Notes under the pieces: generated by a model
The model's database searches: none
The model's input: the letters and a program-made list of their open reading frames with translations, nothing else
Told to the model about the DNA's origin: nothing
Position numbers and translations under genes: made by a program
Part shown: positions 4,442 through 14,760 of the stretch, piece after piece
Position numbering within the stretch: position 1 is the first letter of the stretch
How the letters are laid out: the number at the start of each line of letters is the position of its first letter
Assembly: GCF_032062105.1 (NCBI RefSeq)
Contig: NW_026940018.1
Location: 186,001 to 250,000, forward strand
DNA length: 64,000 nucleotides
Source of the DNA: Saccostrea cucullata
Taxonomy: Eukaryota
Reading direction: 5' to 3'

Positions 4442-5108
4442 TCAAGAAGCGGCTGTAACAGAGAGAAAAAACCAAAACATGGAACAATTTTTAATAAAAC
4501 AGGATGAGTTTATTTCAATTACTGTATTAATATTAATATGAAAACCACAAAACTTACACTTCATGCTGCCCATAGATGGCATCATCATACCGTTCATTCC
4601 TCCCATGTTTCCGCCCATCATATTCATCATTCCCATTGGCATCATCATCATGCTACCTTTGCCCATGCCGTCTCCCATTCCTCCGTTCATCATACTGCCC
4701 ATAGATGGCATCATCATAGAGTTCATTCCTCCATTAGCTGGCATCATCATCATCATTTTGTTCATTCCTCCCATGCCGCTGTTCATCATGCCTCCTCCCA
4801 TGCCACTGTTCATCATACCTCCTCCCATGCCGCCGTTCATCATGCCTCCTCCCATGCCGCCGTTCATCATGTCTCCTCCCATGCCGCCGTTCATTCCCAT
4901 ACCTCCTTTTAAAAATGTATTTAAATAAGTGTTAATTATCGATGGTGGTAGCTTGAAATTTTCTGTAATATTTCACACACAAAATCAAAATACGAAGAGA
5001 AATTTAAAAACTTATTTGTAAGGAGATTATAATTTCAGTACCTGGCCCGTAGCCTGCTGCGCTGGCGACAGCAATAAGGCAAGAAACGGCAACTAGAGAG
5101 AAAACCAT
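4442..5108 (-). CDS. Gene A: secreted Met/Gly-rich abductin-like protein (~141 aa). Exons 5108-5042, 4905-4558 and tentative 4452-4442; 5'UTR exon ends at 5354
   Basis: Signal exon MVFSLVAVSCLIAVASAAGYGP directly after an AG; phase-1 GT-AG junctions; GGMGGGMMN repeats. The last exon is uncertain because it lies in a garbled region. Confidence 0.85.
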
Positions 5109-5353
5109 CTGGAAAAAATTAAGACAACTGATATTTCAATTATGTATTATATGTTATAACCCTACTGTAATTTTACAGAATCCTTCAGACAAGAAGTCTT
5201 CAAAACAGCCAGTTTATGACAAGGATTATGCATTTCAAATACCGTGAATCAAAGGTTCACTTAATTTTCTAAGATAAGTGTCACTTAACATAGCTATATA
5301 AAGAATTAATAAAAACAATTACGATTAAATAAAAACTTTAAACTTCCACTTAC

Positions 5354-5545
5354 TTTGAGCAAAGGTATTCAAGTGTCGGACAAAAAACCCGGAGAAATGA
5401 GAGACGAATCACTGATTAGATTTCGAACCGAGAACGGTTTATATAGTCAGAGTGTTTATCCTTTTCCGGTGGCCAATTAGCCGGGTGATCATTATGTTTG
5501 TTGTATAACAAGCCAAACCTGACAAAATGTATGCTTTGACTTCGA
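5354..5545 (-). promoter_or_regulatory. Non-coding first exon and core promoter of gene A
   Basis: GTAAGT donor at 5353-5348; TATA (CTATATAAA) at 5446-5438; CGGAAA at 5468-5463; ~190-bp block conserved with the gene B promoter. Confidence 0.75.
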
Positions 5546-6099
5546 TGTTTTATTTTTTGGACGGTTCATTGTTTTGATGTTCTGTTTTAAATCGTGTCTT
5601 ACACACCTTGACATAGTTTTATAGTTCTACATGATTTTCGATAAATTTTTTCTGCATTTTAGTGCAACTATTAATTGCTTTGTCAACATTTAAAAAAAAA
5701 AAATCAAGTATAAGATATCATGCTTGCCATTTTTTGTGGGTCTTTTTTGGTTTTGTTTTCTTTTCCTTTTTTGCTGACAAAATTTCCTAAACCAGAATAA
5801 TTGTTTCTAATTTTTTTCTATGATGTATACAAGGCAGTAAAAAATAAAATCCAAAAAGCTACCAGTTCTTTTATAAACACCGACAAAGGAACAAGAATTC
5901 AATAAGCATTTTCGCCAAAAAGAATATATTTTGTCATCATTTATGAATTCTCTTTAAACGTTTTGTATATGATGAATTAGCCCAGGAAGTTTCAAATAAA
6001 AGACAGAATGAGATGAATTTAAAAAAAACATCTTGGCACAATTTATAAATAATGTATTAGTTATTCATTTCTGATGATAGATTTGGTCTAAAAGGAGAG

Positions 6100-6295
6100 T
6101 ATTTACAATTTATGCTCCCCAGACCTTTGATGCATGTATATAATCCCATGGTTAATATCAATTTTTTTCCTCGTTTCTACCTTTAATGAAACTCATCATT
6201 TCAATGGGGATCGTCATGTTACCATGTCATGTTGCCTTCTATTTCTTCTTTCATTTTGCCGTTCATAATGGCATCATCAGAAAACAATTCCAGCA
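6100..6295 (-). pseudogene. Highly degenerate copy of gene B exon 3
   Basis: catcatttcaatggggatcgtcatgttaccatgtcatgttgccttct...ggcatcatcagaa aligns with gene B at ~13950-14055 with many indels. Confidence 0.5.
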
Positions 6296-11760: not shown

Positions 11761-11789
11761 TTTTTAATTCTGAGGCTTTAGGGAAGGAT

Positions 11790-13330
11790 ATATGGAAATA
11801 ACAAACAGTAGTTAATATCAAACTCCATAAAACGATACAAAATAGGAGCAGAGCAAACACGGACCTCTAAAACATCAGAGGTGGGATCAGGTGCCATGAA
11901 GGAGTATTTTTTCTGACCGGTCACACCCGCCATGTGCCCTTGTCATGATCGGGAAATAACGGTAAAATCCGTCGTCAATTCAATGTATAGATAATGAACT
12001 AACAATTAGTATGAAAAACGTCAGTCAGCATTTGCCTTAATGATAAATTGTATTTGCTGACAAGGTCACTGTATCGACCAGAGAACTTACGAAATGATGA
12101 CTTTAAACGAGACTGCTGATATTCTTGTTTCATCAACTTGCTTATCAATAATTTATCTCGTTTAGGAAATTGTTCATACGTAGAGCATCTCTTGCGTATC
12201 GAATCAACTGAGATATATACACTCCGCATGCAGGCGATGAAGGTATATTGCTGCATAAGTAAGGGAAGTTAACTAGAAAAGTTGTTTTTATCAAATAGCT
12301 TGGTTGTTAGATTACCATTAAGGTCTTTTTCAGGTAAAATATCCAAGTATGAATCATGTGTCAGACTCTGTGGTATCTTTTATCTCAAGCTCTCCAGGAT
12401 ACATATCAACGTAAGAATGGAAATGACCATTGTTAATTGACGATACGTCGTCGATATATCTAAATGTCGAGTTGAATGCCACAGCAAGTGTTTTCTTCTT
12501 TTCACGCATAAGATTTTGTACAAATTCTGCTTCATATGAATACAAAATTAGGTCTGCTAATAACGGAGCGCAATTTGTACCCATGGGAATTCCAGTAGAT
12601 TGTTGGAAGACCTGGTCTCCAAAAACCACATACACATTCTCAATCAGAAACTCAAGCATCTCTTTGATGTCAACTTCAAAGTACTTGTGTGTGCAATCAG
12701 AATGTGTTTTAATAAAATAATTTTGCAAATGACCAATGACCAGGTGAGTAAATTTACGAGTTCCATTTTTATTGAAAAAGCAGCTATCAATGATATCAAA
12801 AAGCCTGAACTTTAATTTATCGTGGGGAATTGTTGTGTATAAAGTTGAAAAGTCGTAAGTTTTTAATCTGTTGATTTTGTTAAAATCTTGTGATTTCAAA
12901 TTGTCCAAAAGTTCTTTGGAATTTTTGAGCATCCACATCTGATTCACACCACTTCTTGAATATATTGTTGCACAGTACTCTTGAAGTTTTTCCTTCACTT
13001 CTGTCAATATCTTAGTGAGGAGTAACGAAAGAGGCTTGGTTGAACATTTACCGGAACACACAATGTGTCTTTGTTTGTAAGGATTTTTATGAAGTTTCGG
13101 AATCCAGTATATATATAGGATAATTCAAATTCATTTTGACTCTGGGGAATATTAAAGATATTTAAAACTGACATATGATTTTGAAGAATTTCTTCCTTAG
13201 AAAGGAAGTATGAGTACAAGTAGGATTACCACTTGTAGAATTAAATCCAAGTTCTTCTAAAAGATATTTATATAATGAGCCTTACAAACGAAGACAATGT
13301 TGTTACCTGCTTTGTCGGCAGGAACCAAAA
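11790..13330 (-). mobile_element. Penelope-like retroelement: 5'-truncated, frameshifted reverse transcriptase
   Basis: ORF pieces with YDFSTLYTTIPH, GIPMGTNCAPLLADL and FRYIDD motifs. No GIY-YIG follows the RT C-terminus. Confidence 0.85.
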
Positions 13331-13675
13331 TTTTTAACGTCATCGCGTCAGATACGAGATTTCTCTATCTCAATTGACAGAGGACATTAAATCAAAGTTT
13401 GGGCGCATTTTATGGGCAACACATTCATGTGTAAATTTTGTACTAATTTACATTAAGTGATGATCAACATACGATTTTGTTATTGACAAACAAACTGACT
13501 CGGTTCAAAAGTAATAACGTAGTTTTAGTTGCAGAAACAAAAACAAATTTTTCTACAACTAGATTTTAAGCGACAATAATTTATTTGTGATACAGATGTA
13601 ACAAGGCAAACACAGGTAAAACTCCTCGGGGTCTTTTACATATGATGAAATAAATCTACATAATATCTCTTATCC

Positions 13676-14760
13676 TTAATAGCGACCTGAAAAGAAATGA
13701 AAAGTTCATTAAAAATATGATTTATTGTTTAAACTTTAAACAAAGCTTATTTTGTTTTCAGTATTTTGAATTTCAGTTTGAAATAGTTATAAATGTAGGT
13801 ACTTGTGAAAAAATATGGTATTTTAAAAATTGTATTCATTTAATCCCATACCTCCCATGGCACCCATATTCCCGGCACCCATCATGTTAGCCATCATATT
13901 GTTCATACTGTTCGTGTTTCCTCCCATGTTTCCGCCCATTGCAGCTTTCATAATCATTTCCATGGGCATCATCATATTATTTTTGCCCATGTTGCCCATG
14001 TTGCCTCCCATTCCTCCGTTCATCATATTGCCCATAGCTGGCATCATCATAGAATTCATTCCTCCATTGGCTGGCATCATCATCATCATTTTGTTCATTG
14101 AAGCTCCTCCATAACCGCCGTTCATCATGCCATTAGCACCGTTCATCATGCCATTAGCTCCGTTCATCATGCCATTAGCTCCGTTCATCATGCCATTAGC
14201 ACCGTTTATCATGCCATTAGCACCGTTCATCATGCCATTAGCTCCGTTCATCATGCCATTAGCTCCGTTCATCATGCCATTAGCACCATTCATCATTCCA
14301 TTAGCACCATTCATCATTCCATTGGCACCGTTCATTCCCATACCTCCTAGAAAAAGTAAGCATTCGTTATTGGCGATTTCAAGACATATCATTTTCCTGT
14401 AAGGTTGGTATTGTTGTGTCAGTAAAGAGATTTGGTAGCATCAATAAGACCAACCGTTGCAATTTTTATCCTAATCAGCCTGAATTTTCTATACATGTTT
14501 ACAAACACCCTTAACATTATTTAAAACGAAAAAAGGTAATATATATGTATTTTTTTAGATTTTGTAATTTGTACTAGATTAATTCTTTTCTGTGGCTTAA
14601 TGATTTTTTTTCTCTCACTTTTTCCTAGCCTTAATGTACATAAATTCTAGTTAAATTGCTTTTTTTAAAATATATTGTATGATCCTCCTTTACCTGGCCC
14701 ATAGGCTGCTGCATTAGCCAAGGCTATAACGCAAGATACGGCAACAAGAGAGAAAAACAT
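13676..14760 (-). CDS. Gene B: secreted Met/Gly/Asn-rich abductin-like protein (~190 aa). Exons 14760-14694, 14346-13852, 13686-13676; 5'UTR exon ends at 15587
   Basis: Signal exon MFFSLVAVSCVIALANAAAYGP (67 nt, same length as gene A); ~11 GANGMMN 21-nt repeats; last exon completes ...MGGRY*; AATAAA at 13585-13580. Confidence 0.9.

Follow-up and report, generated by a model that had tools for sequence, protein, structure and literature searches.

A tandem family of Met/Gly-rich repeat genes in the oyster Saccostrea cucullata with a putative relation to scallop abductin

Organization of genes A and B

The stretch of DNA analyzed in this study (the window) comprises 64,000 nucleotides (nt) of the rock oyster Saccostrea cucullata (Ostreidae; RefSeq assembly GCF_032062105.1, contig NW_026940018.1, positions 186,001 to 250,000 of the forward strand). 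It contains two genes, named A and B, which are members of a tandem gene family with a common orientation. The family comprises five paralogs (X, Y, Z, A, and B) whose first coding exons are homologous. Genes X, Y, and Z are located just outside the window (contig C22155, 168-183 kb). Genes A and B are both encoded on the minus strand and share the same organization: a first coding exon of 67 nt, a phase-1 intron, and a repeat exon dominated by codons for methionine (Met), glycine (Gly), and asparagine (Asn). Their features are listed below in positions of the window.

5108..5042, minus strand: exon 1 of A, 67 nt, phase 1, with the ATG at 5108; encodes the predicted signal peptide and Tyr20-Gly-Pro (in-frame AG/GT sites, paralog alignment)
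4558..4905, minus strand: repeat exon of A, 27-nt units MMNGGMGGG / MMNSGMGGG, then a less regular Met/Pro/Gly/Asn stretch up to ..GSMK; donor T/GTAAGT
4405..4470, minus strand: degenerate exon-1 copy 3' of the A repeat exon, aligning with exon 1 of A, B, and Z from TTTTCTCTCT to CAGG
14760..14694, minus strand: exon 1 of B, 67 nt, phase 1, with the ATG at 14760; encodes the predicted signal peptide and Tyr20-Gly-Pro (splice sites, paralog alignment)
13823..14346, minus strand: repeat exon of B, ten 21-nt units (MMNGANG), then a Met/Asn/Gly/Pro stretch
13676..13686, minus strand: terminal exon of B, 11 nt, conserved, giving ..G-GRY and a stop codon; its use is predicted from the paralogs

Read over the splice, protein A begins with MVFSLVAVSCLIAVASAAGYGP-G-GMGM and protein B with MFFSLVAVSCVIALANAAAYGP-G-GMGM, which are exactly the N-termini that had been claimed for both genes in an earlier reading of the letters (the sequence-only reading). 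The phase-1 break of both first exons splits the Gly codon directly after Tyr-Gly-Pro. Intron 1 of A has a length of 136 nt, with a GT donor and an AG acceptor, and exon 2 runs from 4905; intron 1 of B is 347 nt long and exon 2 runs from 14346. The first exons of A and B are 81% identical at the DNA level, and 17 of the 22 encoded residues are alike. When the N-terminal signature common to both (C-x-I-A-x3-A-A-x-Y-G) was written as a degenerate DNA pattern, the 1.17-Gb genome gave three matches, located in A, B, and Z, and none for the reversed control. The signature of A and B is therefore real and beyond chance.

The repeats of both genes are highly regular. Tandem Repeats Finder reports a 27-nt unit (MMNGGMGGG) in 4.8 copies for A and a 21-nt unit (MMNGANG) in 10.4 copies for B, each with 94% matches. 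The mature A chain consists of 38% Met, 34% Gly, and 10% Asn, the mature B chain of 30% Met, 27% Gly, 22% Asn, and 11% Ala. Phe is found in neither chain, in agreement with the earlier description of repeats that lack Phe and use MMN instead. In the spliced model of B, the repeat exon ends at 13852 with the donor G/GTATGG; a read-through alternative would end in ..NEYNF, its stop codon being located at 13825..13823.

A family of five tandem paralogs

Gene Z was found by a DNA search with exon 1, 3.4 kb beyond the edge of the window, and a scan for Met-rich open frames covered 214 kb of the contig. When the whole 1.17-Gb genome was searched with an exon-1 profile (E<1e-5), only five places were recovered, corresponding to X, Y, Z, A, and B. 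All five gene models (5/5) are in frame with AG/GT sites, and exon 1 has a length of 67 nt (73 nt in X). The ATG directly follows an AG acceptor in all five genes, and we infer from this a preceding 5' non-coding exon. Protein X starts with MASLLYAVSAVLAVSMVTAKSYGP and protein Y with MSFSFVTVLSLIVVANAAYYRP, while Z is identical to A over the exon-1 residues. Met1, Val8, and an Ala, a Tyr, and a Pro are invariant in the exon-1 alignment of the five paralogs; X has only 27-50% of its exon-1 residues in common with the others. All five N-termini are hydrophobic with small residues at positions -3 and -1 (..A-S/N-A-A-x, followed by Y), as read from the translations, which predicts a signal peptide of about 19 amino acids (aa) that would be cleaved before Tyr20.

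The identity of exon 1 among the copies amounts to 69-94%, but that of intron 1 and of the flanks does not exceed the level of shuffled sequences. The last intron of Z compared with that of A, slightly above the shuffles, is the sole exception among introns and flanks. Since exon 1 is conserved while the introns are at shuffle level, this end module is under constraint. The repeat exon, on the other hand, carries a different unit in almost every copy: GSMGGIGSM in X, MMAGGMGGG in Y, MMNGGMGGG in Z and A, and MMNGANG in B. The period of 27 nt is common to X, Y, Z, and A, and that of B is 21 nt.

In X, Y, Z, and B, the repeat exon is followed at a distance of 100-250 nt by a minute last exon of 11 nt (17 nt in Y). 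This last exon provides the endings K-ARY (X), K-SAYYG (Y), K-SAY (Z), and G-GRY (B), and the corresponding motif (cag/NN-GC-N-TAT-stop) occurs four times in 76 kb, only downstream of these four genes. The proteins are 118-313 aa long, with mature chains of 99-294 residues that would begin at the Tyr or at the residue preceding it and, with the exception of A, carry a Tyr at the other end as well. Across the five models, the mature chains contain 27-46% Gly, 20-38% Met, and 1-4% Pro (two to five residues), with three to six Lys, nearly no acidic residues, and neither Phe nor Cys.

Gene A differs from its paralogs at the 3' end. The motif scan detected no family terminal exon 3' of A, and an acceptor within the degenerate exon-1 copy would yield an exon at 4452..4442 and a protein ending in ..MK-SAS. 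We considered this as a normal third exon of A and ruled it out, as the alignment identifies that exon as the degenerate exon-1 copy. A thus has no terminal Tyr exon, and its 3' end falls in this degenerate copy. The exon was apparently lost by a deletion or an unequal exchange that also took most of the neighboring copy.

Transcription and splicing

Four public runs have contigs on B; one of them is recorded as RNA, and for the remaining three this status is a guess. Contigs of all four runs lie on exon 2 of B (13918-14348). They match its repeat exon at 90-99%, and the B-specific GANGMMN units are part of the matched sequence. In the bins 14356-14765, which comprise intron 1 and B's own exon 1, there are zero contigs among the four runs. 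One contig has a loose end at 14348, which after reverse-complementing reads as an exon-1-like ..AVASARGYGP fused to exon 2. The exon 1 in this junction contig is of the A/Z type and differs from B's own; the RNA runs probably originate from another individual or a sibling lineage. In one of the runs, the word depth is as high as about 30,000. Splicing and high expression are thus evident from these runs, while the site of expression is not, because organism and tissue are coded. A few short contigs from the RNA runs also touch 14804-14892, 45-130 nt upstream of the ATG of B, and have unlike sequence on either side. They could represent a repeat or part of a 5' non-coding exon.

These data bear on the possibility that A and/or B are decaying copies without a function of their own and that other members of the family are the ones that matter. 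The loss of the terminal Tyr exon in A, which ends in a degenerate exon-1 copy, would fit such a decay, as would the lack of RNA contigs on B's own exon 1 together with the A/Z-like exon 1 of the junction contig. However, the frames of A and B are open, their splice sites are intact, and their repeats are near-perfect (94% matches). In addition, the B-specific GANGMMN repeats appear in the RNA contigs at high depth, and exon 1 is conserved despite saturated introns. We consider decay of A or B to be very unlikely.

Searches with the encoded proteins

Database, fold, and domain searches were made exon by exon. A Pfam scan of A, B, and two neighboring genes (C and D, described below) revealed no domain. 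AlphaFold2 gave a predicted local distance difference test (pLDDT) score of 55 and no fold for the repeat exon of A, and a feature search of the ESM Atlas with the same exon returned no usable match. Protein word searches with the repeat exons matched no bivalve protein, and the repeat exon of Z had no match at E<=1. None of X, Y, Z, A, and B was found among the NCBI oyster proteins, where the proteins of neighboring genes are present; the five genes thus appear to be unannotated. When the oyster's own genome was searched in six frames with exon 2 of B, the matches were dominated by microsatellite-like repeats.

The repeat exon of B matched bacterial MNGANG-repeat proteins only. Seven small proteins from metagenomes (P0001-P0007) have bacterial-type signal peptides and contain four to six exact GANGMMN copies, followed by a tail containing His, Met, and Cys. 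The likeness between the bacterial and oyster repeats looks like convergent low complexity, and the bacterial Met-rich repeats are perhaps metal-binding.

Such matches raise the question of whether the oyster proteins are secreted metal-handling or antioxidant proteins, with MxM and MMxxM arrays that bind Cu(I) or scavenge oxidants in the extrapallial fluid or mucus. The oyster hyper-accumulates copper. A Met content of 30-38% would suit this role, and the only significant matches of the B repeat are bacterial signal-peptide proteins in which Met-rich repeats stand beside a His/Met-rich tail. The mature oyster proteins, however, contain neither His nor Cys, and a role in metal handling leaves unexplained both the Tyr caps at the two ends and the Gly-rich, elastomer-like composition. 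The neighboring genes, moreover, resemble structural Met-rich matrix proteins. We regard this explanation as highly improbable.

Comparison with scallop abductin

Abductin is, to our knowledge, the sole natural elastomer known to work in compression, and we know of its sequence, available since 1997, from scallops alone. The open literature examined on abductin describes no relative in another bivalve. Our comparison was made via descriptions of abductin (accession AAB94680.1) in reviews. According to these reviews (of Cao et al., 1997), the N-terminal domain of abductin comprises 20 residues and is rich in Ala; the protein has a signal peptide of 19 aa, Tyr at positions 4 and 20 with a third Tyr elsewhere in the chain, and Cys at positions 6 and 10. 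The mature chain has 116 residues, including 14 Met and 3 Lys, with about 58-60% Gly and about 1% Pro, and its repeat is the decapeptide GGFGGMGGGX with a central Met and Phe. The chain is described as a random coil that requires multiple cross-links, and a dityrosine bond joining the Tyr residues of its two extremities has been proposed.

Several of these features recur in the oyster family. All five paralogs have an abductin-like predicted signal peptide of about 19 aa. Of the two numbered Tyr positions, Tyr20 is invariant in the alignment of X, Y, Z, A, and B, where it would start the mature chain. Of the two Cys positions, Cys10 is present in Z, A, and B, whereas X and Y have no Cys at all. 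The core GGMGGG of the abductin repeat is found in Y, Z, and A and is absent from B, and few Lys residues and nearly no secondary structure are common to abductin and the oyster proteins. Tyr residues at both ends, the presumed cross-link sites, are likewise shared by abductin and X, Y, Z, and B (the C-terminal one being lost in A); in the four oyster genes the C-terminal Tyr is encoded on the separate last exon. The oyster repeat is a nonapeptide (27 nt), or a heptapeptide in B, in contrast to the decapeptide of abductin. Unlike abductin, the oyster proteins contain up to 22% Asn and form a set of five diverged paralogs.

The sequence-only reading had further claimed a ten-residue identity with abductin (CLIAxxSAAGYG). 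This identity is taken here as an assumption. The abductin string given in that reading fits all four Tyr and Cys positions stated in the reviews, which makes it more credible without verifying it.

Other molluscan matrix proteins

Pinctada belongs to the same order as the oysters. Its LMP (described in 2019; sequence in the supplement of PMC7591529) is an extremely Met-rich framework protein of the hinge ligament with the N-terminus ..YS-YGP-RNRGKMMP. LMP and the oyster family have in common that they are secreted, contain a Met-dominated repeat region, and carry Y-G-P right after the signal peptide (..YGP-GG(M) in the oyster family, with 20-38% Met). The LMP repeats (MMMKPD), on the other hand, are charged and contain Pro, and LMP is much longer and has no Gly-rich core. 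A unit of the MMMKPD type occurs in none of X, Y, Z, A, and B. In addition, a terminal Tyr exon is not known for LMP, and its signal peptide is just loosely like that of the oyster family.

A second point of comparison is provided by the shematrins and KRMPs, which are reportedly shell-matrix families with repetitive low-complexity domains. The oyster family resembles them in its tandem cluster, its conserved signal-peptide exon, its fast-diverging repeats, and the gain and loss of genes by unequal recombination. The oyster genes thus show the conserved signal exon, divergent repeats, and local array of a tandem family of low-complexity secreted matrix proteins. Shematrins and KRMPs differ, however, in being Gly/Tyr- or Lys-rich, in belonging to calcified layers, and in lacking a Tyr cap with a last exon of its own.

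Neighboring genes

At least 10 Met-rich genes are located at 141-214 kb of contig C22155 (-45,000 to 28,341 relative to the window; loci L003-L007 and the window itself). For most of these genes, X, Y, Z, A, B, C, and D among them, a first exon encoding a signal peptide was found. This region of about 75 kb has the appearance of a locus devoted to Met-rich matrix proteins. Further members are listed below; the first three are given in positions of the contig and the last two in positions of the window.

141117-142049, plus strand: Met-rich open reading frame (ORF) with MTNPMxSTM repeats
152185-153015, plus strand: Met-rich ORF, Met/Ser/Pro/Ala-rich
159861-160094, minus strand: Met-rich ORF from the scan for Met-rich open frames
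20445..22705, plus strand: gene C, with exon 1 at 20445-20511 (67 nt, phase 1, signal ..VSAY-G) and a Met/Pro/Gly-rich exon at 20733-22705
27105..28341, minus strand: gene D, with a signal exon at 28341..28281 and the main ORF at 27878..27105; secreted, Met-rich

Gene C has about 680 codons, is repetitive and rich in Met, Pro, Gly, and Ala, and shares the architecture of A and B. Its first exon has no detectable homology to exon 1 of A and B, as the exon-1 profile gave no match. An exhaustive HMMER representative search with C returned low-complexity look-alikes only and one fragment. The ortholog of C in S. echinata is an ORF of 739 codons (locus L018, 17678-19897). Protein D is 100% identical to an uncharacterized NCBI protein of Saccostrea cucullata and 66% identical to its S. 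echinata ortholog. The order C, D, an nSTAND3-like NTPase (36564-38009), and the exons of proline dehydrogenase (about 49.8-51.5 kb) is the same in L018 of S. echinata, a locus that ends 1.5 kb short of the expected position of the B ortholog.

The window also contains repetitive elements. A fragment of a reverse transcriptase lies between A and B (12354-13061, minus strand), with a weak RVT_1 match below the Pfam cut-off. A satellite of 162 bp is present in 20 copies (91% matches, GC content about 45%) and adjoins a 146-bp repeat in three copies (29946-33193 and 33840-34282). An ORF of 856 codons (58696-61266, minus strand) resembles a non-long-terminal-repeat retrotransposon by its sequence.

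Proposed function and evolution

We propose, with moderate confidence, that the products of the family are secreted, Tyr-cross-linkable elastomers of the extracellular matrix or hinge ligament, and probably distant true relatives of abductin. The proposal draws on the conserved end modules, the Gly/Met-rich composition without a fold, the RNA evidence, the published features of abductin, the ligament protein LMP of Pinctada, and the surrounding cluster of Met-rich genes. Each gene is built of three modules. The first exon supplies the predicted signal peptide, and its cleavage would leave Tyr20-Gly(Arg)-Pro-Gly at the mature N-terminus. The fast-changing repeat exon contributes a chain of nearly all Gly and Met, with Asn, Ala, Ser, or Ile added according to the copy. 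Finally, the tiny last exon puts a Tyr in the C-terminal position or beside it, in most cases directly behind a Lys. The proteins are most likely secreted by the mantle epithelium into the extracellular matrix, where the chains, which are predicted to be disordered and flexible, would form an insoluble, rubber-like network with cross-links at the terminal Tyr residues and perhaps also at Lys and Met. Its elasticity would be entropic, as in the review model of abductin. The oyster hinge ligament (resilium) seems the most probable site, and the FGGMGGG decapeptide of abductin would have been swapped for Met-rich nonapeptides in its oyster relatives.

A number of observations weigh against this proposal, the first set concerning the kinship with abductin. 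Tyr4 of abductin is absent, position 4 being Ser or Leu in the oyster paralogs, Cys6 is absent as well, position 6 being Val, and the Phe of abductin is missing from all mature oyster proteins. The compositions are far apart, with 30-38% Met in A and B versus about 12% in abductin, and 27-46% Gly versus about 58%. The proteins are best described as plausibly related to abductin. Moreover, if our assumed version of the abductin N-terminus is correct, it would match Z and A at 12 of 23 positions, compared with about 50% for paralog X. Such a value would be odd for the split between oysters and scallops, because it is as much as or more than what X shares with Z and A. A second set concerns the oyster genes themselves. 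The C-terminal Tyr is missing in A, which may be decaying, and the use of the last exon of B is predicted from the paralogs rather than from RNA. The RNA runs carry no tissue label, and the guessed status of three of the four applies here as well. Lastly, Pinctada has Met-rich insoluble proteins in its nacre and prisms in addition to its ligament, so Met-richness alone is no pointer to the ligament. The ligament site is the weakest step of the proposal.

The same observations can be turned into a different account. Here the genes would form a family of repetitive, low-complexity shell-matrix proteins that is restricted to the oyster lineage, has no relation to abductin, and provides an insoluble framework for shell layers or periostracum instead of a ligament rubber. 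The N-terminal likeness to abductin would then be a coincidence of signal-peptide composition, and that of the repeats a convergence. This account draws on the occurrence of Met-rich insoluble proteins in all three Pinctada materials, on the missing Tyr4, Cys6, and Phe, and on the divergence of X, which makes the assumed 12/23 match to scallop surprisingly high for descent. Repeats also converge easily, and bacterial secreted proteins share the very MNGANGMMNGANG repeat. It has to accommodate, however, that Cys10, Tyr20, and the signal length of 19 aa coincide with the published positions of abductin, as do the GGMGGG core and the Lys...Tyr C-terminus with features of that protein. The N-terminal signature, shared with the assumed abductin sequence, is found nowhere else in 1.17 Gb. 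Of the acidic residues and chitin-binding parts that are usual in proteins of calcifying layers, the former are almost absent and the latter are lacking. An origin unrelated to abductin is in our opinion rather unlikely.

The sequence-only reading had gone further in postulating an Asn/Met variant of abductin outside scallops. The source is indeed the genome of an oyster, a bivalve with a hinge ligament, and a scallop origin is ruled out by the identity of protein D and by the genome, which has no FGGMGGG array (13 scattered matches versus 14 in the control). Cys10, Tyr20, and the signal length support the claim; Tyr4, Cys6, Phe, and the decapeptide do not. The genes would seem to work like abductin, but they cannot be classed as abductin on present evidence.

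As an extension of the proposed elastomer function, the 75-kb region could be the hinge-ligament rubber locus of the oyster, with abductin, LMP, and the five genes derived from one ancestor with two end modules. We offer this only as a tentative and somewhat doubtful suggestion. The end modules would be the first exon with signal and Tyr-Gly-Pro and the minute Tyr last exon, between which the repeat core would have been replaced repeatedly. If this is true, ligament elastomers would be set by their Tyr caps and composition rather than by a given repeat, and proteins with 30-38% Met would be able to act as biological rubber.

The five paralogs represent natural variants of the same end-capped design with another core (up to 38% Met, Asn, no Phe), in which the features required for elasticity and cross-linking may be tested. 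Genome annotation misses such genes, as the five are not among the NCBI oyster proteins while their neighbors are present. The family also offers a way to the proteins of the oyster ligament.

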